From Takakia lepidozioides (lineage: Eukaryota; Plantae; Bryophyta): a stretch of 64,000 bases of DNA. Under the pieces are notes generated by a model that saw only the letters and a program-made list of their open reading frames with translations, was not told the origin of the DNA and ran no database searches. Location: NCBI GenBank assembly GCA_030704615.1, contig CM060731.1, positions 66,340,001 to 66,404,000 on the forward strand. Reading direction: 5' to 3'. Shown here piece after piece: positions 2,339-40,400 of this stretch (its first letter is position 1; each line of letters begins with the position of its first letter). A program made the translations under genes and the position numbers.

Positions 2339-4109
2339 TGATTCCCTACCAACCCAGACAGCTCACCCCAATCACTACAAGCCTACGTACAGAACAAAAA
2401 AACAAATCTGATGCCCACATCAAGAAACAGAAAACCCAACGGGCGGACATGCAGCCCCCGGTGGCACCCGTCGCCCCCGAACGCATGAACCCCACCCCAT
2501 CCAGCCGGCCACGTGGCAGGTCAACCCTACTGGAGGGCCCCAAATCACTGATTTTTGGGTACCCCCACGCTTTCCAAGAAATCCTGCGGGCAGTCCTTTA
2601 GGATTTTTGGGGTGCCATCAACATAGGGGGGGCGTAGAATTTAAGTTCCTACATTTTTCATTCAGGGCTCGAATTCATCCGAATTCATCTCGATGAGTTT
2701 CATCCAATCAAAATCTTCCGGCAACCTGATTCAGGTCGCCTCGTCCATTAGGGGTTAATTAGATGATTATTAGCATTTCTCCTGTCACTCTTAGCGTGGG
2801 TGCTTGGAAATACCTTTGTAGCATTCGTCACGACGGGTTCGATCACTGGAGTCGGATTTGTGTCACTGGAGTCAGATGAGGAGGCCGTCTTGGTTTGGTA
2901 ATCTGGAGTTATCTTCTGTTGACTTAGTCCCTTTTCATTTGGTTTCCTAACAGCGCTACTCAGAGTATCGGTATGCTGTCTTTCACCTTCTTGAGAAACT
3001 GGACATGACGATATTGTTGTTATTAAAACACATTTTGTTCATGACAAAAGTGAGCTTTAGGATGAGGGACAGGTTCAATTGTGGAGACGTTTATGCAAGT
3101 TGTGGTACTCAGGAGTTTGCGGGTATGAAGGACCATGGTACTGTACGAGGATCGTTCTGTACAATCTGTGGGAGGACGATCAAGGCCAACTGGAGCTGGA
3201 CTTCAAAACAGACCCTGAGTGAACGGTTGCTAGTGCCTGATCATAGTTGTCAGATTTTCTAAGACGGTCTGAATCAAGAATGCTTAGAGGTGTAAACTGT
3301 CGGTAGTGGAGTCTGAAAGAGATCTTCGTCTTACTATCATCGCGGTGCTAATTTGTTGCCATGTTTTCAAGCAAAGTGGGTAGCCATGAATTCTTGTCTG
3401 GAAGACACTCGTTTGAAGCCTGAATGAAGCCAGGGCAACAGTTGTGAGAGCACGCCCGAGTGTACAGGTCCCACAGAAGGCAGAGACAGCCAGGACAGGA
3501 ACATATGTGCCTCTGAAAAGTCCTTTGCCAACACAATATTCATGAGTAGTACTATACGAATGGCTTATAGGGGGTTCCGAAGTGGAGGTACATGTTAGAA
3601 CGGATCAGTACACGTGTGGCCTCGTACTCATGTTAAATGTCTGTTTTGATACTTTTATAGGGAACGCATCAACTTGCCAGAATTCCAGTAGTGTTGGGGA
3701 ACAGGGATTGAAAGGAAGGCATTCTACGTTCTTCAGGAAGACTAAAAGGAACAGTTGGGAGTGTCCTCACCATGCAGCACCCTGTTATAGCGGCGACAGT
3801 CATGGCTACCCAAGGCAAGGAGAGTCCCAGACGCAGAAGTTGTTGCAGAACTGTCTTGCCAAGAGTGGTTGAATCTGTCAATCTTCATGGCAATGGTCAA
3901 CCATGCTAATATTTCATATCCATCACTTTTTTGGGAGGTTTGCACTTTTGCACATCCAGTAGTGAAAAAAAAACTTCGCCCAAGCATCAAATAAAAAGTT
4001 GGCGAACAGCCGTGCAAGGACTATGTTCTTGATGTAAGTGAAGAGGGTCGCTCTCAGATGGGAGTGTACACCGGAAATGTATCAGAAAATGTTTAGTCTT
4101 CAGGCTTCC

Positions 4110-4390
4110 CGCTCGTCGGGCATTGACAGGCTACCTTTCCTCTCTGCATCTGTTTGTTTGTTCAAAGGTACACTCCCCGACCTGCATTTCAATTTCAGTC
4201 TATTGCCAAGAGTAGAGAGAGCGAAATGTACTCATACCATGTTTGCCATTGCATTGTGGCCATTTACCCAGTCCGTGCCCAGTTTGGGCGGAACAGGGAG
4301 GGGTGTGTGTGAGGGAGAAAGTACTCATGATAGCCTTGTGGCCATAGACCCTGCACCCAGATTGGGCAGAACAAAGAGGAAGAGAGAGTC
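4110..4390 (-). mobile_element. LINE family A 3' fragments
   Basis: Matches the RLKFKLRAGSLPL-encoding segment and the GTACTCATA...TTGTGGCCAT..ACCC...CCCAGTTTG 3' terminus seen at 38110-38300 and 39390-39850. Flanked by GA-rich tracts. Confidence 0.75.
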
Positions 4391-7300: not shown

Positions 7301-7846
7301 TGGCACGTGCGGAGGGGGCCCGGCCCGACCGCGGGCTGACAGGGCGCGGGGCCGTCCGGGATCTTGGTCGTCGGACGGCGAAGGGATCGACGGAGGATAA
7401 AACTCCGGCGATCCGATCGTACGATGGTACGCTGCATATTCCGATCGTGCGACGACGTGGCCGCCGGCGATGCGGTCCCCGGCCGCCGGCATCCTGCGCT
7501 TTTCGTTACGAGGCCGCCAAGCTCGCCTCTCCGAAGGATTTCTTGCTCTCTCTCTCTCTCAGAGAGAAAGCTCGAGAGAGAGATAGAGAGATCTCTCTGT
7601 CTCAAGACTTGGTCTTTCTCGTTGTTGTTTGCAGGTACTTGGTTGCCGAACTTATCTCGGCTGTTCGTTTTTTTCTTATTAGAGCATCCCCATCCCCATC
7701 TCCATCTCCATCCCCATCCGCAGAGAGAATTGTGGTGGAGTTCTGAGTTCTGAGGAGCAAGGTTTGTGATTTGTCTCTGTACTAGGGGATCTTGTGGTGT
7801 GGTAGGAGGAGGGGGTGAAGTGGAGCCCGTTTCTTGTGTGGGAAGG

Positions 7847-9031
7847 ATGGAGGGTGGAGAGGGAGCGTTTGAGAGTAATAAGAAGGCGAGTCAGGCATGC
7901 AAAGCGGGGTTGAATGGAGAGGAGGGAGATGGGCACAAGGTACAGGTAGCGACACAATGTCCTGATGCGGCTTTGTGGACTGTTCTTCCCAAGGATGTGA
8001 TGGAGAAGGTGTTGGCTTTTCTGCCTCTTCATACTCTTTTTCAGGCTCGGTGTGTGTGCAAGGGGTGGCAGAACATCGGTTTTTCGAACAACTTGGTGAA
8101 GTTGCGGTCGGAGATTCCGTCGTCAAGCCCGTACTTTCCTGTGTTTATATCTAAAGGTGACGATCGGCGGTGGTGTGCGTATGACCATGCGGAAAGCAAG
8201 TGGCTGCATCTGCCGCCGCTGACGTTTCTGCCTGGCGAAGCGAAGCGGATTATAACTGGAGGGGGAGGGCTGCTGTGTTTCAGTGAAAGCCCGAATGCTA
8301 AACTGAAGAGTGTGTATGTTTGTAATCCCATGACTAAAAGCTCGAAGGTGCTACCGCCTTTGTCGAATGATTGGGAGCCGGGAATTACGCACATGGTTGT
8401 GGATGCGCAGAAGAATTCCTATAAGGTGATTGTGGCTTGCGCCCAGTACGTGGAGAACACTCATGTGTACGATTCTCAGCGGAATTCTTGGCTGGCGACC
8501 AGTTGCCTGCCCTCCCATTTCCTGTTGTGGGAGAGGCGCAGCAGTGCGTTCTGCAATGGGTTACTGTATTGCGTGGCTCTCGAAATTGGCGGTACGAACA
8601 TGGAAGGGTTGATCGCGTTTGATATGGTGACAGGGGTGTGGACCGATGTGCATGAACTCCCTCGAGGCATAAGAGATGATCCTTATGTGCTGTCCTGTGG
8701 AGGCCGCGTCTTGCTGGTGGCTGCACAGAAGAATACCAATGGCCGCCTAACCAGCATCCGCATAGTTGAGTTCGATCCACAAACCAAGGCATTTCTGGAG
8801 GTAACGGAAATGCCTCAAAACGTCCTCTTAGAAGTCTTCAGGTGCAGGGGAGGTTGGAAACCCGTGGCTCATGGTGACCGCATCTGCGTGGCCTCCCACA
8901 AGACCTTGCAAGCTGCAGTTTATGACATGTCCCGAAGAGTTTGGCTGGAGCTGCCCAAGTGTCCTCTGAAAAATACCAAGGTAGACATCGCTGCATTCTG
9001 CTTTGAACCCAGTTTAGACACTTTGACATAG
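7847..9031 (+). CDS. F-box/kelch-type beta-propeller protein, intronless CDS
   Basis: F-box LWTVLPKDVMEKVLAFLP...ARCVCKGW followed by kelch-like repeats (GGGLLCF, VYVCNPMTK, VYDS...W). First ATG at 7847; probable 5'UTR intron ~7635-7785. Confidence 0.9.
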   Translation: MEGGEGAFESNKKASQACKAGLNGEEGDGHKVQVATQCPDAALWTVLPKDVMEKVLAFLPLHTLFQARCVCKGWQNIGFSNNLVKLRSEIPSSSPYFPVFISKGDDRRWCAYDHAESKWLHLPPLTFLPGEAKRIITGGGGLLCFSESPNAKLKSVYVCNPMTKSSKVLPPLSNDWEPGITHMVVDAQKNSYKVIVACAQYVENTHVYDSQRNSWLATSCLPSHFLLWERRSSAFCNGLLYCVALEIGGTNMEGLIAFDMVTGVWTDVHELPRGIRDDPYVLSCGGRVLLVAAQKNTNGRLTSIRIVEFDPQTKAFLEVTEMPQNVLLEVFRCRGGWKPVAHGDRICVASHKTLQAAVYDMSRRVWLELPKCPLKNTKVDIAAFCFEPSLDTLT

Positions 9032-17429: not shown

Positions 17430-17796
17430 ATCAATATCCATTTTCTGATACATTGTCCGCGATAATGTCACCAGAGAGTGACCTTCTTCATGACAATCAA
17501 GAACATTGTCTCTGCACCTCTGTTCACCAACTTGCAAATCTTGAGGCTGAGCCTAAAGCCCTGTCCCTGTTGGGGTCTAACTTTTGAGCTGGTCACACAC
17601 AGCAGATTGATGCTTGTGTGAAGGTCTTCCTAGAGGATATCTGGAAAGCCCAAACTAATTGTTTGTATCAAGGTAAGTCATACTACCGGAGTGAGCTCCT
17701 CGCAAAGGTAGTTTCTGGTCACTTTCGTTCCGCCCAAACTGGGCGCGAGGTCTATGGCCACAAGGCTGCGGCAAACACAGTCTTATGAGTACATCT
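17430..17796 (+). mobile_element. LINE family A, 5'-truncated 3' fragment
   Basis: Homologous to the reverse complement of 39390-39760. Ends CACAAGGCTGCGGCAAACACAGTCTTATGAGTACATCTATCT. Confidence 0.8.
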
Positions 17797-18223: not shown

Positions 18224-21200
18224 TCACCAGTAATCCCCACAAGAACACATCCCATCTTGAAAGTGGTGAAAGCGGTTTCCATCCCGTACAACAATTTCTC
18301 GTCCAACAATCTTTGAAATGAATTTAGTGGCAGTGTGGCAATCGCCACACACCCGAAGGTTCTTGATTACACGAAGAGCCGTACCAGCGGGAGTGGCGAT
18401 CAGCCCAAAAGCAATGGCCAGCTTCTCACTGTGGTAGCAAAGAGAAGATTCTTTTTGCTCCTCCTCCACGTCATGCAATACAAAGCTGGTGTCGGGTACA
18501 TACCCAGCCTTCTCCATCTGCCCAGACAATCTTTCTAGCTCAGCATGAATTTCCTCAATTTGTGGATGCAATCTGTCATCTACAAGGAATGTATGCACCT
18601 GGTTGTTGACCTCAATGCAGCTTTGCCCTGGCTCTTTTCTGACATCCCTGTCCTTCATCATTTTTCTTACATTTGCTTGATCATCCCACCTGCCAGCAGC
18701 AGCATAGATGTTTGAAAGAAGCACATAAGTTGGAGCCTCCTTTGGATCCATCTTGAGACGGCATTTTGCCACACGTTCTGCGAGCTTCACATCACCATAA
18801 ATTCTGCAGGCACCAAGTAAGGCCCCCCACACAGAACCACTTGGCTCAACTGGCATTTTGTGAATGAAGTCCTCTGCTTCTTTCAATTGCCCAGATCGGC
18901 CAAGAAGGTCCACCATGCAGCTAAAATGTTCGACTTCAGGAGTGAGGTCATGATCTTGATTCATGGAATCAAAGTAGTGGCGGCCTTCATCCACAAGGCC
19001 CCCGTGACTACAGGCAGAGAGAAGACATATAAATGTTATATTGTTCGGCTTCAAGCCTCCCTGTCGCATTTGTTCAAATAGTTGCAGGGCTTCCACTCCA
19101 CACCCATGCTGAGCACATCCTGCAATCATTGCATTCCATGAGACTACAGTTCGGTCAGCCAAGTTGTCAAACACTTGACGTGCATCCCTCAGGCTCCCGG
19201 ATTTTGCATACATGTCGACAAGTGCATTCTCCAGCATGATTTCTGATGTAATTCCAGCTTCGATGATGTCAGCATGGACCTCTTTGCCCTTATCCAGGGC
19301 TGCCAGGCTGGCACAAGCATTGAGAACGCAAATGAATGTGACCCTGTTCGGTATCACCCCTTCCTGTATCATTTGCTCATATGTCTCTAAAGCCTCTGTA
19401 CCACACCCATACTGAACATATCCTGCAATCATTGCACTCCATGAGACCACATCTCGAGTAGCCATCTTGTCAAACACTTCACATGCATCCTTCAAGCTTC
19501 CACATTTGGTGTACATGTTGATGAGGGCGTTCTCCAAATTCACATATGAAGCAATTCCAACTGTGATGATGTCAGCATGGACTTCTTTGCCCTTTTCCAG
19601 GGCTGCCAGGCTGGCACATGCATTTAGAACACATATGAATGTGACTTTGTCCGGCGTCACCCCTTCTCGTATCATTCGCTTATACATCTCAAAAGCCTCC
19701 ATACCACAGTCATGCTGAACATATCCTGCGATCATCGCACTCCATGAAACCACATCTTGATTAGCCATACTTTCAAACACTTGACATGCATCCTTCATGC
19801 TGCCACATTTGGCATACATGTTAACAAGGATATTATCCAGAGTAACGTCTATGGCAATTCCAGCTTTGATGATAGCAGCATGGACCTCTTTGCCCTTTTC
19901 CAGGGCTGCCAGGTTTGCACAAGCATTGAGAACACAAATAAATGTGACTTTGTCCGGCATCACCCCTTCCCGTATCATTTGCTCATGCATATTGAAAGCC
20001 TCGATACCACTCTCATGCTGAGCATACCCTGCAATGATTGCATTCCATGAGACCACATCCCGGTGAGCCATATTGTCAAAGACTTGACGAGCATCCTTTA
20101 TGCTCCCACATTTGGCATACATGTCAACAAGTGTATTCTCCAAATGAATATCTGGAGCAATTCCAGCTCTGATGACATCACAATGGACCTCTTTGCCCTT
20201 TTCCAAAACTCCTAGGCTGGCACATGCATTGACAACGCTAATGAATGTGACCTTGTCGGGCGGAACATCTTTGCGTTGCATTTGCTCGTACAATTTGAGA
20301 GCCTCCCTAGCACACCCATGCTTGGCATATCCTGCAATGATTGCGCTCCATGAGACCACGTTTGGCTTCAAACCTTCGTGTTGCATTTGTTCAAAGAGCT
20401 GAAGGGCCTCCCTACCGCACCCATGCTGGGCATATCCTGTTATCATCACATTCCATGAGACCACATTTCGTTCAGCCATATTGTCAAACACTCGATGCGC
20501 ATCTTTCATGTTCCTGCATTTGGCATACATGTCAGCCAGGGCAGTCTCCAGAATGACATCCGGTGCAATTCCAGCTTTGATAATGTCATTGTGGACCTCT
20601 ATGCCCTTTTCCAGGGCTGCCACACAGGCACAGGCCTTCAGAAGCGAAATGAATGTGACCCTGTTAGGCGTCACATCTTCCTGTATCATTTGATCATAGA
20701 TCTCAAAGGCCTTCCTACCATACGCAGGCTTGGCATATCCAGCTATCATCGTATTCCATGTAAACCTATCTCGTTCAGGCATTTTGTCAAACACTTTGCG
20801 TGCATCCACCACACTCCCACATGTGGCATACATTTTGACAAGAGTGTTGAGTAGAAAGATGGTTGGCTTGAATCCACTTTCCATAATGTGTGCGTGGACC
20901 TGCTTCCCATCTGCTAGGCCTCGCGTGTTGATGCACTGCTGCAAGAGACTGACATAAGTGTCAGTGTCTGCCAAAATGCCTTGTTGATTCAAAATGTGCA
21001 GGGCCTCTTTCACTCGTCCTGCTGTACACAGTTTCTTCACATCACGATACTGCTCTTGATCTTTTATCATGGCGTCTAGCTCTGTTTTCACCCACGGAGG
21101 GTTAGACCAGCTCTCAATCCAAAGGGCCTCCTTCGTGTGCCTATGTCTGAAGTCTGGTGATCTTGGACTATTCTGTGAAAACCAGCCACAGCTTCAACTT

Positions 21201-21524
21201 CAGCATCGTATGTACCAAGCCGACAAGCATCTTTCAAATGACACGCAACAACCTTGAGCAACCTACTTTCAGGCCCTGCTAATAAGGAATGTCAGCAACC
21301 ACAGATAGAAATGCTTTGGCTGTTTTTGGGGACAAGTGAAAGACTATCTTTATTTTAATTTGAGATACAACCCAGTCCAAACAAACACCCTGATGCCAGA
21401 TTCAATCACAAATTCCTTTACGTCCTAAATGACGATAGCCTCACCTTATCAAGCCTGTTGTCCCACCACTGTGTAGGATCTGAGAAGAACTCCTGCCAGA
21501 GCTGATCCACACTGATTGTTTGAC
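18224..21524 (-). CDS. PLS-class PPR-E1-E2-DYW organellar C-to-U editing factor with N-terminal OSB-type PDF motif (5'-most exon not located)
   Basis: Exon 21524-21445 (QTISVDQLWQEFFSDPTQWWDNRLDK), GT-AG intron 21444-21173, then exon 21172-18224 (NSPRSPDFRHRHTKEALWIESWSNPPWVKTEL...). This is followed by 21 PPR motifs (L-S-P triplets with one extra P, ending P2-L2-S2), E1/E2, PGQSCIEV, HSEKLA, CGDCH and terminal DYW. Confidence 0.93.
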
Positions 21525-21629
21525 CTGCGCACAAAACACCACTTCAACATTGATGGTTGTCCATTTCTGAATTAGCATGAGCTTTCCAAAATCTGTCTCT
21601 CTCACAAATGCTCCCTTCCTACACATATC

Positions 21630-22622
21630 TTGGTGTTGATTTTTCCTTCAGTTGTAACTGGGATGCGCATATACAAAAAGGGGTTCAAACCTAAAAGCAA
21701 AGCTCTGCGGCTTTTCCAATGCAGAGGGATTAATACCTCCGTTAAAAGGACCATGCTGACCATGCTTTGCAACGTTATTAGGCTACCTTGGGATACGCAT
21801 GCGCCATGTGGGTGGGCAACTCCAACCGTGATAGAAGTTTGGAATCTATTGAGCTTTCGGTGCTCAAAGAGAGAATTTCAGCGCGCTAGTCTAGAACAGC
21901 TAACGTAACTGTTCGGGGCGAGTTTGGCGTACCGCCCTTGAGCTCTCGATGTGCTGAGTTCAAGGTCAGATGGTGGGTCAGTTGAATTGACCCTAACATG
22001 ATCGACTCTATTTCTTGGAATGAAGACCGTCCTGTTAAACAAACTGAATCCTGGCGGAAAAAGGTAGAGTACAAGTACCTGAATAAGAACTGACCCTGCT
22101 AGACGAAGCTGCCTTGGAGGCGGAAGTGCCTAAGGCCATGTCGGGGAAGCACGAAGAATGTCCGAACCCGAACAAACCGAAGATAGGCATGGAACCTCCC
22201 TGAGCTTGTTTCCAGTTTGTGACATGGGCCTTAAGGATGATCTGAAGGGCATTCTCTCGGTACTAGACTGAAATTTAAACTCGGGGCGGGGAGTCTACCT
22301 TTGAAGAATGCACAGGCGCAGAAAGCAAAGGGAGACTGTCAATGCCCTATGTGCAGGCGGCCTTAAGACAATATCCATTTTCTGATACAATCGAGCGACC
22401 CTCTTCAGGACCATCAAGAACATAATCCCTGCACCTCTGTTCACCAACTTCCAAAAATCTCGAGGCTGAGCCCAAAGCCCTGGCCCTGTAGGGGTCTAAT
22501 TGCCGGGCGGCTCAACCACAGCAGATTGATGCTTGTGTGGAGGGATTTTGTAGAGGAAATCTGGAAAGTCCGAACCAATTGTGTATACCAAGGTTAAGTC
22601 GCAATGTGAGCCCCTCACAAAG
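21630..22622 (+). mobile_element. LINE family A fragment (post-RT region to CCHC), lying upstream of the PDF exon in the inferred PPR intron
   Basis: Collinear with the reverse complements of 38190-38680 and 39480-39860 (e.g. ACTAGACTGAAATTTAAACTCGGGGCGGGGAGTCTACC). Decayed. Confidence 0.8.
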
Positions 22623-23979
22623 TGTTCAAACGTATCCATAAACAAGTTACATATAGATATTGTTCATGACACAATGATCATAACTGAAATGTGGGTTTAA
22701 ATGTACATAGCTCTCTGTCTTGCTCTCTCATTCTTGTTTCGTGAAGCAAGATGATTCGCATCTGCTCTGAAAATTTCGGCTCGTTCAGAGTTCCCCTGTC
22801 CAACTCAGAATTCGATTTCCCTTCTCCATCAGAATTTCCTCGAACAGTTTTCGCCCGGTTCGTCGCTGCAGAGAGCAGTGACAAAGGCCAAACAGAAAGG
22901 ACTTGCAGGCAATCTTAAATTCCAGCTGAATGATACCTACTTTGTTTAGGCCAGTAACAAATGGAAGACAGTGCGACAGATGGAGTATGACCTTTCTCAG
23001 TCCAGCAATGCCTGCCTAACAAGATAACCCAAGCAGTTATAGATCCCATACATATCACTATTTTTATCAAAAACCTCTTAAGAGTGCAGAGCAAAGCGGA
23101 GACAGTATATTCTACTTAGAGACCGCTGAAAAGTTGGAGACCAGTTTAGCGTACAGCAGGCATAGGGTGCTTTAGTGCCATGTCATCGTCCTCTCTTTCG
23201 TAAAACTGCTTGAGTTGCCCAAAAAGAAAACCGGTGTGCAACTCCTTGAACTGTCACGTAACTTGGCATTGAAGCTGCCCATGGACTTCGCTTCTTTCTT
23301 GTGTTCCTTTGTCACGCATGCTCTTCGAGCTTTCCGCATACTTTAAGGTAATTGCATCACCCAACAGTGAATGCGTAGATCTAGCTTAGCTGCTGTGAAT
23401 AGTGCTGGCTGAAGACTTCCACAGTTGTACATATGAGCTTCATAATCGTGAGCGCCAAAAAGAAAGACAGGTACTGGTACTGAACAGCCCAGACAGGTAC
23501 CATTGTCCCCAATTGCCAAAGCACCAGAAGTACCCACTAACATTTTCACCTTGCGGTGCTTCATTGCGGGGACGTTAGAGACCTGGTCTGCGTGAATAGA
23601 GTTTCATGAATATAAGCCAAAATCATCACGACTATTACCACTTGACAGCAATCACCAGCACATTGACATTGTATATATACAGGGATGTGGTGTTCTAAAG
23701 AACAAGTTCTGCATGTCAGTCCTGCATGAGCTGTGGACCCCTTAGGTAAAGAGCCCGTGTGAGGCCCGTGTTAGCCTCGCCACAGTCAGTACAGGAAACC
23801 ACACTATATGATTTGAAGTTTTGAGGGTTTGAAATCGATCCAGCCGTTCACTATCACCCTACAGGGACCATGTACCAATCTGTGACCGCCTAGAAAGAGG
23901 GCCCACTCTGTAATCCTCATCTCTAAGACTTATTCTCTGAGATGATGCCCTCTTGCACAGGTAGAATCAATTGAGCACT

Positions 23980-25500
23980 TTGTGATTCTGAACTGATTTC
24001 TATCACAATTTTGGTGGCTGGATTGCAGGATACCGCTGGAAATACTACTGTGATATTCCCCCTGCTGGAAGAACATCAAGGAGAAAGTAAACTGGTCACT
24101 CCAAAGGTGCCCCTACCCCCAAATCTCTATCTCTAAGCCCCTTGGCTTCATTGGCTGCAACTGACAGGGCTCCACACTTGCGTGAGATTAGGCCCTGTTT
24201 GACAGGAAATGTAATGGTCTGTCTTTTTGCTCTCCCTCCTCACCGGTTGTGTTTTCTCTCACTCCGTAAGTGCAACACTCTATCGAAATCTGTCAATCTC
24301 ACTCCCAAGAATTGATCAGATAGGAAACAGAGTCCTTATGTACCACAAGGAGCTGTATTTCACATGATGCATTGCAATGGGCCCAAAGATGAGAATAGTG
24401 TTCATCTTCTAGATGCAATGGGTTGGACAATTAGATGAGAAGACGAACACTATCCAGGATCTGTACAGGGGCGCTTTCTGCGAATGAGTCTATCATTTTT
24501 GCACCTGTGGGAACTAAGACCTGGATAGTGTACTGCTTCAAGAAAAATAAGAGTGAGTCTACAAATGGTACACAATATTTGTGGGATAGAGAGAAGGGAG
24601 CCACAAGAGATTCCAAAAGTGATGCAGTCACTTCCAGTCCTCTCCACTGTGAGAGCGTTGGTGATGTACACAGAACTCATCATCACATAACAGCTTGCCC
24701 TCTAGAAAGTAAGCTTCAAGGCAAACTATTGAATGGGGACAAAAGAGGTCGACACAACCTCAAACCTTTGGATTGAGCATATGGCCTGTAAGGCTTTTTC
24801 CCGAGTTCTTTCATTGTTTCTGCCAGGCAACAACTCACACCAATTGTAATATAGGTATCTCTTCTCTCTGTCTTTTGTCTCTCTCTACTATATTATAACC
24901 GTGCAACCGGCCTGTCGAGTTTTCTATTGTCTGACACTTATCAGATGTAGCCTCATCAGTCCCCTGCCATCTGATCCATTCCCATTAACTAGCCAATAAC
25001 GGGCATCACACTCTGTCCTTGAGTTTGACCTCTGTGTTCATATGCCAACCCTCTATTTGACACTCAAGCAACCGAATCTCTCCCTTGAATATAGTTGGCA
25101 TTTAAGAGTGCTACGGTAATTTTGGGGTCAGTATTCATGTCCTGATGTGTGAAATGAACTCTGGACTACAGGCTATACATACACTATGCCTTGCCTCTGC
25201 CTTGCAGAAGTGACTTTTAAATTTAGGTCCTGAGGGATGATCTGAACTGATTCCCACTAAATTGTGGTGGTTGGATTGCAGGATACCGTTAGGCAAGGTG
25301 TTGAGTAGTGGGCACAAGCTGCCTTCCACCTCTTTTACCATTGATTCAAGTCCCTTCCTCAAGAACTCAAGGAAAAAATTAACCTGCCTGTCACTTCCAC
25401 TCCAAAGGTGCCCCTTCTCCCAACTCTCTATCTCTCAGCCCATTAGCTCCGTTGGCTACAAATTACAGGCTCCTCACCTGGGTGACATTAGGCCATGTTC
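23980..25500. repeat. pair of diverged ~220-260 bp direct repeats (23980-24200 and 25235-25500)
   Basis: Shared blocks TCTGAACTGATT, GGTGG.TGGATTGCAGGATACCG, CACTCCAAAGGTGCCCCT, CTCTCTATCTCT and ATTAGGCC.TGTT. Confidence 0.7.
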
Positions 25501-26423
25501 TGAAACATCAAATGTTCTTTGATGAAGTGATTAAGTCAACCTAGTCTGTACAGGCCAACTGATGTATGGGCATGATATAATTACACCATACTCTTGCTGG
25601 ACCATCTCTCCACCTTCTGCATCAAATGGCACCTGCAATAACTATGAGTCAGACAAATAACACAAAATGAACCCAATAGGCAAACTGGTTGACCGACAGC
25701 CCTATCGACTGGCCCCACACGACGGCCCACCCTGACTTTCCCCTCGAAGTAATTGATCAATCTCGTGTATTGATGGTAACCGATCAAGGTATCCATAACA
25801 GGGAAAAAATAAAAATTGGCCCATTTGGGTGACCCACCCTCCGCAGTCGCATCGCTGACCGCAGTTCAATACTACAATTACATGACTGTCCATTCCCATG
25901 CCGTCCACATGCCTCATGCCCACCCATGCCCACCACATGCATACATGCACATGAGATTTAGTATGAGATATGACTAGATTCATTGTTTATTGCAAGGATG
26001 GCACCCAAGTGCCAAACGTCTGAATCGGTCTTTGTTCAGTTGCTCCACATCCTCCACTCCCATGGTGCCCTCACAACGTGACTGTGGCCACCACGAATCT
26101 CCATGATCTCTTTCATCTATGTAATCGCCTCGTGTGGCAAGATCTTGTGGAGGAGAATGATCGTAGCCGGTGTCTTTTCCAACCTATTCTATGGAGACAA
26201 TGTGCAAATGAAGCTTGTGAGAATGTCACACTTGCGAGAGATTCACATGTTTCTGTTGTGATCATAGGAGCAACGATCAGCACAACAGCAGAATGAGCAT
26301 CAAGAAGAGGATTACCTACGGTTTGGGGCATTCAAACTCCATGTATTTTTCTTTGTGAGGACTTGTGGGCTTTCAGCGCGATCCTTTTGCTTTGCATTTT
26401 GTAGGCCTTATTAGGTCATTACT

Positions 26424-28645
26424 ATGGTGAACCGGAGCACAATGACTAAGAACATGCGCCAATACCATGAGGAATATGACACTAACGAGTGGGACGACCT
26501 CATTTGCGAGGCCCACTCCAAGGCCAACGTTCAAGAACTTGGTGATCACCACAAGAAACCATTTAAATGTATCCACTGCCACATACGTTACAAAGATAAG
26601 AAAAAACTGAATGTTCACAGGATTAATGGTTGTCCTGAAGTTGACAGGAAACTGAAGAAGTACCCCGTTTTTTAAGCTGGCCAACGAAGCATCGTGGAAT
26701 AGGTTATCATTGACAAAAGCTTCATGCCTAAACGGAAATATGGTAATGCCACGGCCACAGCCAATGTCAGTAAGGGGGGTCCGCAAGAGGAGGTCGTGCA
26801 TGATGTGCAGCGAACACCCGCTAAACGCCGCTAGCAATTGCAGTTGGCCGTGAAAAAGAAAGTGAAGAAGCACACCTCGCAGGAGCCAGCACCTTCCAAC
26901 CGTCCTACATGCACTCACAATCATAGAATGAAAAAACAATAGTCAAGAAGACCACATACGCATTGGCTGGGAAACAGATGAACACCTCTGTGCATGATGA
27001 GGTTTCAAATTTGCTCAAGTACCATGCTTTTCGACAATACATGCAAGTGTATGACCAGAAGTTCCAGGCTGCACAGATAGAATTACTTGGATTGAGGGAG
27101 ACGTTTGTGAAATCAAAATTGGAGGAGTGGGATCAGAGGAGGTTCCGCGAGGAAAAAAAACAACAAAGGGGTTGGTCTCCGATATAGGTCGTAGTAACCA
27201 CAGACCGCCCGGACTATTTGAGCACTTACTGCTGGAATCATTCAGAGGAAGAATGCAAACATGTCATGGACGTCCTCGCGGTGGCTAGGTGAGGAGCAAA
27301 CACCAACGACCTGACCACATCCCCTATGATCCTCAGATTGATCCGCATCATGTGGATGACCCAGGTGGACGTGAACTTGCCTATTCCCACCATTTTTAAT
27401 AGTCATTTGTTAAACATGCTTCAAATATTATTTGGTTCTGAAGCTGGCCGTAGGGTTGTCCGAATATCTGCTACTACGCTGCTCAGTTCAGGGTCTCTCA
27501 TGTTTGGCAATATGCCAGATCACCTCATTCATGCCAAGTTTGAATTGGACGAAGTTGTACATGCTCTCATTGGAAAGAATCAAGCCCAACGCAAGTGTGC
27601 ATTGTAGAAAATACATGCAAATGTTTCTGTGATCAGAATACGAACAATCGGGGACATGGCAATTGCATTTCCCGATCACTTTCATACACTGTGGTGTGGG
27701 ACCACAAATCATGATGCCAGGGAATTGGCTGCCCTGGATCAATTTGAGAAATGTCTCAAGCAGCAGGATGATTTGTGGATCGGTTGGATGCGCATTTCAC
27801 CTGGTACGCTCCATTCGCCTTTTTCATTTCCTTCTGCACTTTCCCCTACTCTTCATGTGATTCCATTTTTCATTCTCATCAATGCATTGTCGTGCAGGTG
27901 ATCAATACATATTTATGAATGCTGCCATACATGAAGCCACAACCCTGGCCCGGAACAGCTTGCGAGCATTGTGGAGTAATGTATGCGAAGTAGACAAACT
28001 CTCATTTGGCGTTGTGGAGTATTGTATGCGAAGAGGACAAACTCTCATAATGTATGGTAGCATTCATAACTGTGTCTCGATCACGTGCACGACAATGCAT
28101 TGTCCGTACAACCTGTAGGTGTGGATGGGCAGGACCATATGTAGCAACGAGTTGAGCGCATTGTCCAGGCTGGTCCAGCTGCTGCACAAGAACATGTTTT
28201 TCGTGATGCACAAGTGACAGTGGTGGTTGAAAAGCAACAACTGACTTGTGACAAATCAAACCCATCTCCAATAAGTAATATGCTTGAACACCTCCATCTC
28301 CCAACTGCAAATTGTGTAGAAATTCATGTGGTGCGAGAAGAAGTCAGCCTAACAACTGTTGGAGCTGCCAACCCTGTAGAATTGTGCTCCTGGAATGAGC
28401 CATCTAGCACGTTGACAACGAGGCGTTTTGACGAGGATGTTCTTGCAGGAAGCGCCCACCAGGGTGTGCAAAGCCTTCAAAATTTTAGGCTGCAACCATT
28501 ATCTTTCCTGCAGAAACTGAAATTGCTCGCAGCTCCCACATCTCCACTAGCATTAGCCAAAGAAGCTCAATTAGCATTGGAGGATGCGCAAAGCATCAAG
28601 GTTGAGAAGAATCGGGGGACGGGGGGAATCCAAAACCAACAATAG
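26424..28645 (+). pseudogene. decayed MULE cargo/second gene including a C2H2-like zinc finger
   Basis: ORF 26424-26675 has KPFKCIHCHIRYKDKKKLNVHRINGC. Further exon-like fragments (26963-27187, 27629-27790, 27898-28020, 28214-28645) carry stops and frameshifts. Confidence 0.45.
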
Positions 28646-28994
28646 AGTTATCGTAAAGTGAGCCTGAGTTTGGTACCCTGTTACGGGTTTCATCCTGAGT
28701 TTGAGTTAATCCGTAAAGTGCAGAAAACTGAGCACGAAGTCAGAAAAGAGGGCACCAAATCATAAACTGGGGATGAGGGCAACCGCTGCTATGGCGCGAG
28801 CTCGTGAGCTCTGACCGCCGACTAACAAAACTCGGCACCAAACTCCTTTCACCCCCATTTTCCTAGTCCTGGCAGTTTGGTCCCGTGTTTTTTTCTAGTC
28901 GTACCGCTTGATCCTGAGTTTCGAGTTTCATACCGAGTTTTGGCCAAACTCGGGGTTCTCATGCCAAGTTTGGGACCCTTTACGGATAACTCTA
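28643..28994. mobile_element. MITE (~350 bp) with TAGAGTTATC(C)GTAAAG TIRs
   Basis: TAGAGTTATCGTAAAG (28643-28658) and CTTTACGGATAACTCTA (28978-28994). Internal GAGTTT(G/C)G subrepeats; no 8-bp TSD visible. Confidence 0.75.
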
Positions 28995-29029
28995 ATGTAG
29001 TAGGTAATTGTTACTCATTTACAACCTGA

Positions 29030-30480
29030 CATTGCAGTTTGGGGTGTGCCAATTGCCCATGATGGCTTTTATCTTAGCATTTGCATTGTCTACAATGAAC
29101 TGGTACGGACGCCAAAGCGACCGCGCATTGGTCATTCGTTGTTTTAACGCCACTGATCGAAGACCATCATGATGTATATTAATGGATACTGTAACAACAG
29201 GGTAGCAATTGTGAGTTCATATATGATAGGGCAAGCAAATCATCAACTCATGGATCCAAGTATTTATTAGAACGTAAGTTCAAATCCCATTGAGTCCGGT
29301 ATGCAGCATGAGCGGCTCAAAACATATAATATAGATTGTTTTGCCTTCCGTCACTCAGAAATGCAATGGAGTCATATATGCCACAAACAAGAGATGTAGA
29401 GGTGTGGAAAAGAGGAGAGAAAGATGATGGGAAGGGTATGCACAAGTTAAATAGTGGAGTAGAACTTAGCACACATAATAGAAATCACAGTTTCAAAGAG
29501 CATATGAAGTAGTACACGACCTTCTTTTCATTTGTATCGAAGGTTGCGTCGCGTGCAACAATTCTACCATGTCCAAGGTCAAGCATATGTTCTTTCTGCC
29601 AATATTCTGTTTGTATGCCCAGTACAAAATGGCAGATTAAGCTTGCGATCGCTTGATATCCAGGCCGGGTGAACGACTTCTTCTTGATAGTAGAAGACAC
29701 TGTTCAGATTTTCGGCCACCTACATTTAGACACTTAGAGCGTCGATAGGATATTTTCTGAAAGTCTCATCGTCACATTTGTTGGCAATGTTTTTGATATC
29801 ATGCGACAAGAGGAATGTGTCTGGGGTAACTCCAACCCGCCTTCCATGATGTCTTTCACTTTTTGTGTGTGGTTTGCCATTATTTTGTTAATAGACAGAC
29901 CTAGGTGCAATTGGTGTACGATCCACGCTCTCATATCGTTACTAAGATGAGATGCGAGAGCATGCCGTGACTTCTTATAGGAAGGCCTGTGAACATGAAC
30001 ACCATGTCTATAGACGTGGCTCTTCTGGTAGTACACCAACATAACGATTCTGGGATCAAGATAACATTATTTTACTATGAATCTGCATGTACAACCTTGT
30101 TTGATGCCCTCCTCCCCTTTGTTCCTTGTTATTCTTTTTTGTTTTGGTTTCGGTTCGACTGTAACAGACGTAGACGCAGTTGACATCTTTTGTGCTGGTT
30201 TTTTTGGAGGAGGTCGTTTCCAAATTAGACAAAGAATAGAGGTTCACAGACACGCATTGAAAAGAATTCTACATACTAGCCTTATCATTTGCATGCAGCT
30301 GTTCATCCGTGGAGCCAACATGGCAACTTCGTGGGTGACAGATTGGCATTGTTTGGCGAACTCACAAGGGGCATTTGAGCGAGCCGACTTTCCTGCAATG
30401 AAGTCATCAACCCTATCCCACGGAACAAACGCGAGGCTCTCCTATAGTCAGGTGCACCTCCGTGCCATTGGGACCTCCAC
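29030..30480 (-). pseudogene. MULE/SWIM-family transposase pseudogene, C-terminally truncated
   Basis: Fragments SLAFVPWDRVDDFIAG, ASHLSNDMRAWIVHQLHLGLSINKIMANH, FVLGIQTEYWQKEHMLDLGHGRIVARDATFDTNEKK and WRPYQFIVDNANAKIKAI match the pattern of plant MULE-SWIM proteins (DATF and IVD acidic positions). Confidence 0.7.
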
Positions 30481-31081
30481 GTCAAATACATGGTGTGTGA
30501 ACGTGCCTTGGGATAGGGGTTTGCATTGCACCTTGCAATTGTACGACCAGACAAGGAACGACAACATCTCGCGAAAGGTCAATGGGCATGCATGCAGTAC
30601 ACGAGGGTGCAATGGTTGAAATGACAGCAGAACGTACCTATTTGGAAGCGTAATGCAATGCAACAGCGTGAGAGGCAATGTAGAGATGTGAGGGCGGGAA
30701 CAACCGCAGCCTTTTTTGCATTTTCAATCTGAAACTTGAATTTCAAATACCTTCCATAAATGAGGCATGTATTTTGTGCAGTTCATGTGTGAGTTGGACA
30801 TGGATGGGGTGCAAGCATTGATATGGGCATGCATGCATGTGGACGGCATGGGGATGGACAATCATGTAATTCTAGTATTGATGTATTAAACCGTGGACGG
30901 GGAACTTAAGTTTAATCCAATTGGTCACTTCAAATATTTCAAAGAAAGAAAAGGTGGAAAAGAAGAAGAACTGGGAGAACCTAATATCATCACTGTGGGG
31001 AAGAAGATGTCTTCCAAAAATCAGACTGGTTCTTTTCTTAAATGTTTCTGTGCAAATGCAGTGTGTTTTCATGCATTGAAG

Positions 31082-31120
31082 ACTGAATCTGAATCTGAAT
31101 CTGAATCTGATGATGATGAT
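31082..31120. repeat. (GAATCT)n(GAT)n microsatellite
   Basis: Seen directly in the sequence. Confidence 0.9.
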
Positions 31121-31603
31121 CTCTCCACACCCTCACCTGAGCTCTGAGATGTAGAGATACAATAAGAGTGTGTTCTTTGAAGACTGGAACACACTGGGTT
31201 CTGGCTATTTCCACCCGACACTCTGTGATCTCGGAACGCTCTTGTTCATGACTTGCTACATATTGAAAGTCACACTTTTGTCTTTTGTGTGTGGGTATGC
31301 TTCATCTGCTGGGGTGTTTGACACCACCCTCTCACCCTCTTGGAAGTTGGAGAAAGAGCAGCCATGGCGATGCACAAGTCTCCCGGAGGATACGTTTGCA
31401 AACCTGGCCATGGGCGGAAAGCTTCAAGAAGGTGTGGGCCTCACAAGATCTACGTTCCTGTGCATTTTCCAAACCGCATTACATTGAAATTTGTCTCCAA
31501 CAGTTTCAAGCCAATTGCGGTGTAGTGGAGATCACCGGATTATGGACGGGGGGTTGGGAAAGGAGGCAATCTGGAAGTGGCCAGAAAAAAGTGGCCACGA
31601 CCC

Positions 31604-34600
31604 ATGGTTACATGGAGCACGGAAGTTGCCAACACATGCAAATATCCCAAAAGCCAGAATAGAGACCAGGAGAAGCCTGGTAACGAATATTTTTCAAACC
31701 CCAGTCAGTGGTGGGACAAGCGAGGCAATAAGGTGAATGTCTGTTATGTTAGAGTAACAAGATGTATTGAAAAGATTTCTCATCAAGTAGTAACAGCGCC
31801 CACGCTCTCTCGCTCTCTCCTCGTTCCCTTCTCCTGATCACAGTGCAACTACTTTCACATGGGCGACAGATGTTGCAAGCTAGGAGCGGATTGGATAAAC
31901 TTTAGCTTTCTAGGTCGTGGGCAATACCAACGCATGAATCTTTACTTAATTTCCTGTGACTGCACATCCTAATTCACATGCATCACATTTGTTGCAAGCT
32001 AGAGGGCTAGAGGAGTAGTGCTGGAATGCAGCTCATGCTTTCTGATGTGTTGAAACTGAACGACTGACCACTGAAGGTTATGTAACCAGTGGGGATAAGT
32101 CTCTATGTTGTATGTGGTCTCTCTCTGCCTCACACACATTCTTGCTTTATTGCCACATTGAGCATAAGAACTAGTGTCTGATAGGTAGAATGGGAGGCAG
32201 GGATAGCTGAAGATGGCAGGGACCAAATGTGGGCGCAGATCAATTCTAGAGGACCCGATTTCAAGTACAAGAGTTCCAACAAGGTGCTGTGGATTGATGG
32301 CTGCAAGAATCCTGCCTTGGTTGATGGTCAACTGGAAGAAGCAGCAGCACAGTTGTTTGGATCAGATACCTTCACCTTGCCAACTGCTTCTGAAAGAGGA
32401 CCAAGAGTCCACAAGAACTCTGCTGGCACTTGCGGGAATGTGCAGACACTCTGTAAGGCAGGACAACTGAAAGAGGCGCTGCACATCTTGAACCAAGGAG
32501 GCATTTTAGCAGACTGCAAGACTTATGTTTGTCTTTTGCAGGCGTGCGTCAGGAAGAATTCCCTAGCAAGTGGAAAGCAGGTACACGCCCACATTATTGA
32601 AACCAGATGTAAGCCAAACATCTTTGTGTTCAACACCCTCATCAATATGTATGCCAAGTGTGGCAGCTTAGTGGAAGCACGCCGAGTATTTGACAAAATG
32701 CCTGAACGAGATGTGTTTACGTGGAATATAATGATAACAGGATATTCCAAGAATGGGTGTGGTGGGGAGGCCTTCCAGATCTATGAGCAAATGATATGGG
32801 AAGGGGTATTGCCTGACAGGGTCACGTTCATCTGTATTCTCAAGGCGTGTGCTAGCCCGGCAGCCCTAAGACATGGCAAGAAGGTACATGCTGACATTAT
32901 CAAAGCTGGAAGTGCTCCAGATATCATTCTGGAGAACTCCCTTGTCAACATGTATGCCAAATGCGGGAGCATGAAGGATGCACTCCAAGTGTTTGACAAT
33001 ATGGTGCAGCAAGATGTGGTGTCTTGCAGTGCAGTTATTGCGGGATATGCCAAGCATGGATCTGGTAGGGAGGCTTTGGAGATGTATGCACGAATGATAG
33101 GGGAAGGGGTGACGCCTGATCAGGTCACATTTGTCTGTGTTCTCAATGCATGTGCCAGTCTAGCAGCCCTGGAAAAGGGTGTGGATGTCCATACTGACAT
33201 CATCAAAGCTGGAATTGCGCCAGACTCCATTCTGGAGAACACCCTCATCAACATGTATGCAAAATGTGGGAGCATGAAGGATGCATGTCGAGTGTTCAAT
33301 AGTATGGCTTCAAGAGATGTGTTCTCATGGAGTGCAATGATTGCAGGATATGCTCAGCATGGATGTGGTAGGGAGGCTTTAGAGACCTATGAGCAAATGA
33401 TACAGGAAGGGGTGATACCTGACACAGTCACATTTATCTGCGTTCTCAATGCTTGTGCGAGTCTGTCAGCCCTTGAAACAGGCAAAGAGGTCCACACTGA
33501 CATCATCAAAGCCAGAATTGGGGTGGATATCATTTTGGAGACGGCCCTTGTTGCTATGTATGCCAAATGCGGGAGCATGAAAGATGCTCGTCAAGTGTTT
33601 GACAATATGACTCACCAAGATGTGGTCGCATGGAATGCAATGATGGCAGGATATGCCCAGCTTGGTTTTGGTAGGGAGGCTTTGGAGACCTATGAGCAAA
33701 TGATAGTTGAAGGGGTGACTTCCGACCCGATCACATTTGTTTGCATACTCAATGCGTGTGCCAGCTTGGCAGCACTGGAGAAGGGCAGAGAGGTCCATGC
33801 TGACATTATGAAAGCTAGATTTGAGCCAAATGTCATTCTAGAGAATACCCTTGTTGACATGTATGCTAAATGTGGGAGTCCAAAGGATGCACGGCAAGTC
33901 TTTGACAGTATGACCAAGCGAGATGTCGTGTCATGGAATGTGATGATCGCAGGATATGCTCAGCATGGGTGTGCTAGGGAGACCCTGCAAGTATTTGAGC
34001 AAATGCAAGAGGAAGGGTTGAGGCCAAATGTCATCTCCTTTATATGTGTTCTCTCTGCGTGTAGCCATGTGGGCCTGGTGGAAGAAGGCCGTCACTACTT
34101 TGATTCCATGAGTCGATATCATGGTGTCACTCCTACAGTGGAGCATTTTGGCTGCATGGTGGACCTTCTTGGCCGTGCAGGGCAATTGAGAGAGGCAGAG
34201 GATTTTATTAACAAAATGCCAATGGAACCAGGTACTGGGGTGTGGGGGGCTTTGCTTGGTGCCTGCAAAATTTATGGCAATGTGGAGATGGCAGAATTGG
34301 CAGCAAAATGTATTCTCAAGTGCAATCCACATGATGCTCGAACTTATGTGCTGTTATCAAATATCTATGCTGCGGCTGGCAGGTGGGATGATGCAGGAAA
34401 GGTGAGAAAAATGATGCAGGACAGAGGTTTCAGGAGGAATCCAGGGCGCAGCTGCATTGAGGTGGACAACCAGGTGCATACATTCGTCTTTGATGACAGA
34501 TTGCATCCACAGATTGAGGAAATCCATGCTGAGCTGAAGAGATTGTCTGAACAGATGGAGGAGGCTGGGTATGTGCCTGACACACGCTTTGTATTGCACA

Positions 34601-34848
34601 ATGTGGAAGAGGAACTGAAGAAATCTTCTCTTCGCCATCACAGTGAGAAGCTAGCCATTGCTTTTGGGCTCATCAGTTCGTCCCCTGGGACTCCTCTCCG
34701 GATTGTCAAGAATCTTCGGGTGTGTGGTGACTGCCACACAGCTACCAAGTTCATATCAAAGATTGTTGGGCGAGCAATTGTCGTACGGGATGCTAACCGC
34801 TTTCATGACTTCCAAGACGGGGCCTGTTCTTGTGGGGATTACTGGTGA
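31604..34848 (+). CDS. PLS-class PPR-E1-E2-DYW editing factor with N-terminal OSB-type PDF motif
   Basis: Exon ending at 31732 (...NEYFSNPSQWWDKRGNK), GT-AG intron 31733-32238, then exon 32239-34848 (INSRGPDFKYKSSNKVLWIDGCKNPALV...). This is followed by 17 PPR motifs, E1/E2, PGRSCIEV, HSEKLA, CGDCH and DYW. Start is uncertain: ATG 31604, or ATG 31364 separated by an in-frame TAG at 31523. Confidence 0.92.
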
Positions 34849-36469: not shown

Positions 36470-36760
36470 CGTACTCATAAGACGTTTGCCGCAGCTTGTG
36501 GCCATTGACCCTGCACACACGACGGGACAGAAACTACCTTTGTGAGGGGCTGAAGCCGGTCACAGACCTTGGAACAGACAATGAATCTGAGCTTTCCAGA
36601 TATCCTCTAGAAATCCACTTTCAAAGTTGGTAAGCAGAAGCTCAGGCACAATTTCCTTGATGGATTTGAAGAGGGTGTCTCTCTCGTGAGACAATTGAAT
36701 CAGAAAATGAATATTGTCTTCAGGTTGCCCACACAATGGGGAATTGCAGAAGAGAGTTTG
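36470..36760 (-). mobile_element. LINE family A 3' fragment, internally deleted
   Basis: GTACTCATAAGACGTTTGCCGCAGCTTGTGGCCATTGACCC terminus plus a CGQPEDNIHF-encoding segment. Confidence 0.8.
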
Positions 36761-37443: not shown

Positions 37444-40400
37444 GTAACGTCCCCAGAGGGCCACAAGGACCGATGGACAAGCTAGAACTGCTTGAGGATA
37501 CATCAAGAGTCACCTGAAGACGACGTGCCTCACAGGTAGGCCATGAGGCTCTTAAGATCTACACGATGAAGGACAAAATGTGCTTACAAATGATGTCATA
37601 ATCTTGTTGCTTTGGAGGGGGCAGCTTTTTAAGCTAGAGTGGCAATATCAGATGCAACTGCACGACATTGCATCAGAAAATGGATAATTGTCTTCAGGCA
37701 GCCTGCACATCGGGCATTGACAACCTCCCTTGCCTCTCTGTATCTGTTTTTTATCCGATGGTGGACTCCCCAACCCAAGTTTTAATTTCAGTCTAGTGGT
37801 GAGGGTAGGTACGCCCTCACTCCAGCAGTGGGACTTACCTTGATACAAACGATTACTTCGGCTTTCCAGATTTCCTCTAGAAAGCCTCTAGAAAGTCCTT
37901 CACAGTAGTGGACTTATGTACTCATAAGACGTCGTTTGCTGTAGCCTTGTTGGACTTGGAGGTCGTACTCTTAAGACTTTGTTTGCCGTAGCCTTGCGGC
38001 CATAAACCCTGCGCCCAGTTTGTGGGAGAAATGAAACTTTATAACGTCTGCAGAAAGCTCAACGAGCTTATGGCACAAAAGGAAAACAAAGCAACAAGAA
38101 GAAGAGAATGTACTCATAAGACGTTGTTTGCCGTAGCCTTGTGGCCATTGACCCCGCGCCCAGTTTGAGCGAAATGAATATTGTCTTCAGGTTGCCCACA
38201 CAACGGGAAATTGCACTCTCCCTTTCCTCTCTGCTTCTGTTTGCTGTTCAAAGGTAGGCTTCCTGCCCTGAGTTTAAATTTCAGTCTAGTGCCGAGAGTG
38301 GGTAGACCCTTGAGGTCATCCAAGATGTCCTCCCCCATGTCACAGACTGGAAACAAGTTCAGGGAAGTTTTCTGCCTAACTTCATTTTCATCAGACAATC
38401 TCATGGCAACAGACATGTGACATACACTCCTTAAGCACCCCCACTTGAATGGATTCTAGAGACTTAGCCTGGTTGGAGTTATCAACCCATATAGCAGATC
38501 CGTACTCCAAGGCAGGTCTAATAACGCAACAAAGCATGGTTTTCTTAACCTCAGAGTTGACCCCTCTGCAGTGGAAAAATTTAGTGAGCCCCAGAGCTTT
38601 GCCCTTGCCAGTTTGAACAACTTTCCGGATATGTGCATCCCAATTACAATTGGAGGAGAACTCAACGCCCAGGTAAGTGTAGGGAGGACCGGGATCTCTT
38701 GGCTACCCCACTGCCACTTAAGATCACTTCCTCCCTCTCCTCTGTCGTTGAATGCTACCACTGCACATTTGCTGCCATTAGCCTCTAGCCCCCAAAGATC
38801 AAAGTATCTCTTCGCGCAATCAATCAACTCCTGGAGATTGGTTGGAGTCTCCCCTATGCCTGCGAAGTCATCCGCAAACATAAGGGCTGGTATGGTGGTA
38901 TCACCCACCCTTAACCCAAATCCCTCACTTTCCACATCCTCGAGGAGTTGATCGATGAAAACATTGAAGAGCAGAGGGGAGAAAGTACATCCTTGAGCTA
39001 CAGCTTGGTCTATGTCAAAGAAGTTGGACTTCTGTCCGTTAACAGTGACACAGCTTTTGGTGTGAGCATACAAGTTGTGGACAACTCTCCACATCTTTCC
39101 CTTGATCCCACAAGACCAGAGGCGGAACCATAGGCCATCTCTCCACACTGTGTCATAAGCCTTTTTGACATCCAGGAAAAAGACATAAGTGGGTTTCCCT
39201 TCTTTTTTCCTTCCCTGGATAATCTGGCTTAGAGTGAAGATATGATCCACACAGCCCCTGTTTCGCCGAAAGCCAGCTTGGCCTTCGTGGAAACAACCTC
39301 TAGACTCCAGATCAACCTCGAGACGAGTACTTATAACTCTGCAGAATGTCTTGCCAACAGCATTGACAAGAAGAAGAGAGAGAGAGAGATTGTACTCATA
39401 AGACATTGTTTGCCGTAGCCTTGTGGGCCATTGACCCCGCACCCAGTTTGAACAGAACATATAGGGACAGAAACTACCTTTGTCAGGGGCTGACGCCGGT
39501 AGTACGATTTACCTTGGAATAAACAGTTGATCCAAGATTTCAAGATATCCTCCAGAAATCCCTTCTCACAAGCATCAATCTGATGTGTGTGATTTGCCCA
39601 ATAGCTAGACCCCAAAAGGGCCTGGGCTTTTGGCTCAGCCTCAAGATTTTCAAAGTTGTTAAACAGAGGTACAGGCACAATTTCCTTGATGGAATTGAAG
39701 AGGGTGTCCCGTTGGTGAGAGTACCCAGGACAATGAATCAGGAAGTGAATATTGTCTTCAGGTTGCCCACACAACGGGCACTTACAATCCCCCTTTCCTC
39801 TCTGCGACTGTTTGTTGTTCAAAGGTAGGCTACCCGCCCTGAGTTTGAATTTCAGTCTAGTGCCGTGGGTGGGTAGACCCTTGAAGAGAGAGAGAGAGAG
39901 ATGTAGGGGGTGTAGGGGTAGGGGTACGGGGTGGGAGACTTAAAAGTGGCTGCTGAGGAAAGCGTACCTGTCTCCACCAGCTCCCCAACAAACATTTTAG
40001 ATATGCCTGACATGACGATAGTCATGGGCACGGAAATTGGGCACCCTGCCACACCCTGCAACAGCTGCCCATCCCACCCCACATCTGTGAAAAACAAAAT
40101 TCAATAACGGTTTTAAGGTTTCTCAGCTTCTCCCTCTCTTCCAAGTACCCCCTAGCTTTATCATGCCCCACTCATGTGCCTCCCCCAAGAATCTACATAT
40201 CACAGATCCAGTGGAGAAATTATGGCCATAAGAGCACAAGGAAGAGGGGAAGGCATCTACCCGTCGCATATTGGCGCGTTGAAAACCTGACCGTCGGTAG
40301 CATTCATACCGGCTCATTTGCTCGGGAGTGAACTTGGCTAGCACAGCTCTGTCACCACCAATAAACTGCAAGTTAATGAGTGGTCGATTGACACGTATCC

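Follow-up and report, generated by a model that had tools for sequence, protein, structure and literature searches.

Our analysis of a 64,000-nt stretch of Takakia lepidozioides DNA (the window) showed that the minus-strand gene at 18224-21524 carries a PDF module derived from OSB proteins ahead of a PPR tract and a cytidine deaminase domain that are both intact, and that its exons are spliced. Judging from the sequence, we give a probability of roughly 0.55 to the reading that its product is a sequence-specific organellar C-to-U RNA editor, to which the PDF motif would contribute sequence-independent binding of single strands. Such a protein would be imported into plastids or mitochondria and would work as other PPR-DYW factors do, its PPR tract reading a specific RNA sequence and its DYW domain converting a single C to U. 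The PDF motif would then hold the editor at the nucleoid or the nascent transcript or, alternatively, add grip on unstructured RNA, a job for which flowering plants use separate cofactors. A tethering or avidity role of this kind is reasonable. Single PPR-DYW proteins are sufficient for C-to-U editing (PMC6397227).

The last exon of the gene, on the minus strand, begins at 21172 behind an AG acceptor (21174-21173) and reads through 982 codons before its stop at 18224. A GTG inside this frame is where the ORF caller begins its 955-aa PPR protein, and the first-pass annotation, which had described the frame as open upstream of that GTG to an AG acceptor, was correct in both coordinates and translation. 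It had also placed an in-frame 80-bp exon at 21524-21445. This exon (21445-21524, minus strand; AG at 21526-21525 and GT at 21444-21443) comprises 2 nt and 26 codons and encodes the first half of the PDF motif (LW..FF.DP..WWDNR..K); the second half (P..PDF....ALW......PPWV) lies at 21080-21172 on the same strand, both halves being profile matches. Between them runs a 272-nt GT-AG intron (21173-21444) that interrupts the motif in phase 0. Splice evidence came from contigs of two public runs (X1 and X2), presumed to be RNA and placed on 20400-26300, which give neither transcript starts nor levels. The proposed 21445/21172 junction was indeed present in three contigs, two from X1 and one from X2, which skip the 272 nt between GT and AG on the minus strand; these short contigs were placed at 90% likeness and could derive from close paralogues. 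Numerous neighbouring joints to 21445, differing by a few letters, indicate that paralogous transcripts share this intron position. In addition, three X1 contigs are 100% identical to the locus, with 0 mismatches (20851-21022, 20993-21164 and 22077-22288).

The remainder of the last exon has the layout of a PLS-class PPR-DYW protein, with a P/L/S array ending in P2-L2-S2, E1 and E2 motifs, and a DYW domain with HxE(x)nCxxC and a terminal DYW. The PPR tract (18839-20965, minus strand; Pfam PPR and motif reading) consists of 21 motifs of 35/35/31 aa that follow one another as L-S-P, apart from a single additional P, and its P and S motifs carry the canonical code pairs ND, NN, SD, SN and TN. It is followed on the same strand by the E1 and E2 motifs (18632-18838) and the DYW cytidine deaminase domain (18224-18631), both identified by Pfam, the latter with the PG box PGQSCIE, HSE, CGDC, the terminal DYW and the stop. 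The Pfam matches in this exon were PPR, E (E1), E+ (E2) and DYW, with PF20431, PF20430 and PF14432 at full length; the SSB-like OB domain (PF00436) had no match in the exon, so the gene product is not an OSB protein. The catalytic HSE and CGDC and the terminal DYW are intact. In the PG box tryptophan is replaced by cysteine, both here and in the paralogue in the window (PGRSCIE), as against the canonical PGxSWIE and the W of the other DYW sequences compared. Measured against this paralogue, dN/dS was 0.13 in the DYW domain and 0.13-0.23 over the DYW domain and the C-terminal 300 codons.

PDF is a 50-aa motif of OSB proteins which, on its own, binds ssDNA in AtOSB1 (PMC4166229, PMC6963530). We searched for it exon by exon rather than on the joined spliced model. 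A profile of three second-half PDF pieces matched 457 proteins and, among the best 150 of these, 53 proteins combined an SSB-like domain with PDF motifs, one being named OSB3-like and others coming from Riccia, Ginkgo and Diphasiastrum. An OSB-only profile built from the 91 PDF motifs of these 53 proteins scored 30 bits on the 80-nt exon (positions 2-22) and 46 bits on the next exon (24-54). When all six frames of the 64 kb were scanned in this way, only four matches were significant, namely the two halves in this gene and the two halves in the paralogue (31.7/32.2 kb), which argues that the match is not due to chance. Furthermore, all invariant positions of a 110-motif PDF alignment are kept here, with K35 present as R, and the basic and aromatic positions (WWDNR, K, PDFKHK, LW, PxW) are equally conserved in fusions and OSBs. 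Tandem arrays of 8-14 PDF motifs were also seen in P0039 and P0040, one from Kingdonia uniflora; the arrays described so far hold one to three.

To these data we can add a predicted fold, obtained with AlphaFold2 on a natural lycophyte fusion motif (P0156:22-82) rather than on the Takakia motif: a compact arrangement of a helix, three short strands and a helix, with a pLDDT of 94. In the ESM Atlas this fold matched an SSB+PDF cluster (TM 0.90) and three plant clusters of PPR/DYW proteins with 127, 63 and 57 members (TM 0.87-0.91). The first-pass annotation had claimed an OSB-type PDF motif before a PLS-E-DYW protein; comparison with OSB PDF motifs by profile and by the predicted fold supported this, and the intron position and the contigs agree. 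The motif is otherwise hard to see. PDB structure searches with the predicted fold returned nothing above Z 2.9 and no solved match, Pfam and PDB sequence searches and ESM Atlas feature searches with the motif gave no match, and neither did a word-index search, a method of limited sensitivity, with the first 45 residues. Annotation misses the module because Pfam has no PDF model and because the intron splits the motif. Two clusters of tailed-phage hypothetical proteins also matched the predicted fold in the ESM Atlas (TM 0.73 and 0.67 over 58 residues), as did a plant cluster to which no Pfam family is assigned. Judged by these modelled folds, PDF may have come from phages, as have other plant organellar DNA proteins.

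The fusion is not confined to a single gene. PDF motifs precede a PLS tract in 45 long proteins of Diphasiastrum complanatum, 12 of them with a Pfam DYW match, each carrying one to three PDF motifs, and PDF-PPR fusions were also found in the fern Adiantum capillus-veneris, in a three-motif transcript contig and in metagenome contigs. The window itself holds a second paralogue (31655-34848, plus strand), sister to the gene at 18224-21524 in the DYW-end tree. Its PDF first half ends at 31732, the intron occupies 31733-32238 and the last exon (32239-34848) encodes the second half of PDF, the PLS tract, E and DYW. The PDF motif of this copy is eroded, two conserved Trp being missing. No seed-plant fusion appeared among the best 150 of the 457 profile matches or in the protein search that gave the 45 Diphasiastrum fusions, both non-exhaustive. 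Counting PDF+PPR+DYW proteins in this way supports, at the level of sequence, an expanded PDF-PLS-E-DYW family of seedless plants that is common there.

Conservation within this family bears on what the module does. In 46 Diphasiastrum paralogues mean identity was 80% in the PDF motif, 56% in the linker and 72-77% in the first PPRs, which indicates that the motif is conserved rather than drifting. PDF could nonetheless have been kept for a role other than nucleic-acid binding, such as self-association, docking on OSB or nucleoid proteins or helping the first PPRs to fold, or it could be a passenger that came with the OSB promoter and targeting exons and has little effect on editing. AtOSB2 is a tetramer (PMC6963530), ssDNA binding is known only for the PDF region of OSB1, and the copy number varies from 1 to 3 with erosion in some copies, all of which would suit such a role. 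A passenger, however, would decay like the linker, and the basic and aromatic positions would hardly be as well kept in fusions as in OSBs, so we regard this explanation as quite improbable.

The intron inside the motif is informative about how the fusion arose. It falls in phase 0 after WWDNRxxK. OSB genes of Riccia, a liverwort, and of Platanthera, an orchid, have it at the same codon, as does an Adiantum PDF-PPR gene in both of its PDF motifs. The same position was found in another plant, from a genomic contig with the acceptor (L001) and a near-identical spliced contig (L004); in a Sinapis OSB gene the intron is absent and must have been lost. Since the intron lies at an identical codon in OSB and fusion genes, the PDF module appears to have been captured from an OSB gene as DNA and not by way of a processed mRNA. 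Moreover, the second PDF motif of the Adiantum gene begins on an 80-nt phase 1-0 exon, as in Takakia, and each unit there spans from phase-1 intron to phase-1 intron. With a phase-1 intron at its start and, in arrays, another at its end, the PDF unit is symmetric and would be easily shuffled or repeated, which would explain the presence of one to three copies per protein.

Whether the fusion arose once or repeatedly is less clearly indicated. Lycophyte fusion motifs resemble the 80-nt exon most, at 85% identity versus at most 65% for OSB motifs, and this sequence likeness hints at an old shared fusion. A tree of the PDF motifs (55 columns) gave one fusion group when few non-seed OSBs were part of the set, and five changes when they were added, with weak support; the DYW-end tree did not separate a single from a repeated origin. 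Between the two window genes, 9 of 17 synonymous codons differ in the PDF exons (21445-21495 and 21080-21172 versus 31682-31732 and 32239-32331), as against 60 of 218 across the C-terminal body (p of about 0.02). This is a weak hint, at sequence level, that PDF cassettes and PPR-DYW bodies have recombined.

The 5' end of the gene is its least regular part. The search for a first exon revealed a transcribed upstream exon at 22079-22288 (minus strand), which reaches at least 22288, is matched by a contig with 0 mismatches over 22288-22077 and ends at the donor CAG/GTACTT in phase 1; the native first exon was not found. The length of this X1 contig points to a 554-nt GT-AG intron in phase 1 (21525-22078): 212 of its 291 nt could be placed, and 210 nt up to the donor at 22079, the 80-nt exon and 1 base add up to exactly 291, so the contig most likely spans the upstream junction too. 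Homologue N-termini, including those of OSBs, had no match in 21530-31640 that could represent a native targeting exon. The heavily covered stretch 22300-22560, with an Arg-rich 42-aa ORF from 22423, was considered as a shared targeting exon and ruled out as an antisense LINE 3' end with many copies and indels. Farther upstream, a 46-nt AG..GT segment ending in phase 1 (25587-25632, minus strand), with some contig depth in X1 and X2, is a candidate native upstream exon. Each of the two PDF-PPR-DYW genes is preceded, in its own orientation, by a 58-bp element (25866-25922, minus; 30824-30881, plus; 91% identical), which may be the relic of a regulatory sequence or exon that both genes share, or else a frequent repeat.

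A decayed 3' part of a LINE (21614-22622, plus strand), comprising late ORF2 and the CCHC knuckle, runs antisense to the gene and contains the upstream exon together with part of the first intron. It was recognised from DNA matches of 68-81% with other copies in the window, where it has at least six relatives, one of them inside an RVT_1 ORF. The exon has in-frame ATGs at 22190 and 22139, an in-frame stop at 22265-22263, and out-of-frame ATGs at 22252 and 22225, ahead of the first in-frame one. Starting at ATG 22190 gives a 1046-aa model with a LINE-derived, Ser-rich leader of 37 aa (10 Ser, 1 acidic residue), which from its composition might act as a cryptic transit peptide. The start codon and the targeting of this PDF-PPR-DYW copy are uncertain because its upstream exon is an antisense LINE relic with upstream ATGs, and its protein may be poorly translated, untargeted or started at ATG 21070 without the PDF motif.

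These features lead to the alternative that the family is real but that, in this copy, a LINE took the place of the native first exon or cut it off by its insertion, leaving either a plain PPR-DYW protein without PDF or transit peptide, started at ATG 21070, or a message suppressed by upstream ORFs. The position of the exon in the LINE relic, the stop at 22265 and the two out-of-frame ATGs speak for such a loss, together with the low contig depth (7-11) and the changed PG box. Against it, the 982 codons have stayed open, the catalytic residues are intact and every invariant PDF position is kept; both splice sites are used, the in-frame ATGs before the PDF motif yield the 1046-aa frame with its nearly acid-free leader, and a native exon further upstream could join 21524 in other isoforms. 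We therefore hold the loss of the PDF form to be unlikely. The preferred reading, an organellar RNA editor with a single-strand-binding PDF motif, is nevertheless weakened by some of the same observations, and we counted against it the LINE-derived 5' exon with its upstream ATGs, the absence of a native targeting exon from 21530-31640 in the N-terminus search, the PG box change, the eroded PDF motif of the paralogue and the occurrence of DYW in only 12 of the 45 Diphasiastrum models.

The LINE family has left many 3' fragments in the window (3996-4212, 17476-17707, 21614-22622, 36624-36746, 37667-37883, 38172-39460 and 39478-39865), with an RVT_1 ORF at 38456-39460 and a CCHC knuckle; several fragments lie beside (GA)n runs, and the family is abundant in public contigs. 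From their translations, other features of the window are broken piggyBac-like transposase pieces (12-1438, minus), an F-box protein (7766-9031, plus), a single-ORF 2-isopropylmalate synthase with a transit-like leader (50518-52458, minus) and a DUF4228-like protein (54433-55110, minus).

A further alternative concerns the substrate. OSB1 and OSB2 prefer ssDNA to dsDNA and RNA (PMC4166229, PMC6963530), and the DYW domain could be imagined to deaminate dC to dU in organellar ssDNA that the PDF motif and PPR tract hold at bubbles, R-loops or replication forks. The ssDNA preference of PDF (PMC4166229) would fit this, as would the binding of ssDNA by designer PPRs with the same code (Spahr 2018, as relayed in PMC11094755 and PMC9508816) and the action on DNA of a DYW-like bacterial deaminase (PMC11789416). 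However, both DYW domain and PPR code belong to the ordinary PG type, many family members have no DYW domain, and a site-specific C to T change would become fixed in the genome, after which the protein would no longer be needed; in addition, our searches found no paper in which a plant DYW domain edits DNA. We consider deamination of ssDNA very improbable.

Tentatively, and with less confidence than in the reading of this gene, we suggest that seedless plants possess a large, overlooked subclass of editors with their own OSB-derived module, which would couple editing to the nucleoid (co-transcriptionally, at bubbles or R-loops) and take the place of the cofactors of the MORF type that seed plants use; in the most far-reaching case, some members might deaminate ssDNA, and the PDF fold, which lacks a solved structure, may have phage relatives. 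To our knowledge, PLS-DYW factors are taken to carry only a transit peptide before the repeats, and the dozens of lycophyte paralogues and the Takakia copies with a conserved module before the PPRs run contrary to that view. The fusions allow a direct test of where and when editing takes place (in the nucleoid, during transcription) and of DYW action on DNA, and they bear on how the cofactor-free editors of seedless plants gain affinity. PDF could also serve as a small portable module for engineered PPR editors.

Lastly, the Takakia gene can be set beside three known systems. With PLS-class PPR-DYW (DYW:PG) factors such as Physcomitrium PPR56 and PPR65 and Arabidopsis OTP86 it shares P-L-S triplets, P2-L2-S2, E1, E2, a PG box, the HxE + CxxC zinc site and the terminal DYW; unlike them, it has a 54-aa PDF motif, predicted to be folded, on separate exons before the PPRs and the W to C change in the PG box, and its only candidate transit peptide is the LINE-derived leader. 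With OSB1-4/PTAC9, which are organellar ssDNA-binding proteins (Zaegel 2006, cited after PMC4166229 and PMC6963530), it shares the PDF motif, as judged from the profile, the predicted fold and the place of the intron, but its protein has no SSB/OB domain and carries PDF at the N-terminal rather than the C-terminal side, joined to PPRs and a deaminase. The third comparison is with RRM-PPR, RRM-DYW and MORF-P fusions, in which, as here, an accessory nucleic-acid-binding or cofactor domain is built into a PPR protein. We found no paper describing the combination of PDF and PPR in the literature searched, most subscription journals being outside its reach, and a 2026 survey of editing-factor fusions, in which accessory RRM, MORF or zinc-finger domains are rare, never names PDF or OSB (PMC13386178). 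In contrast to those rare fusions, PDF-PPR fusions occur by the dozen per genome, as in Diphasiastrum.
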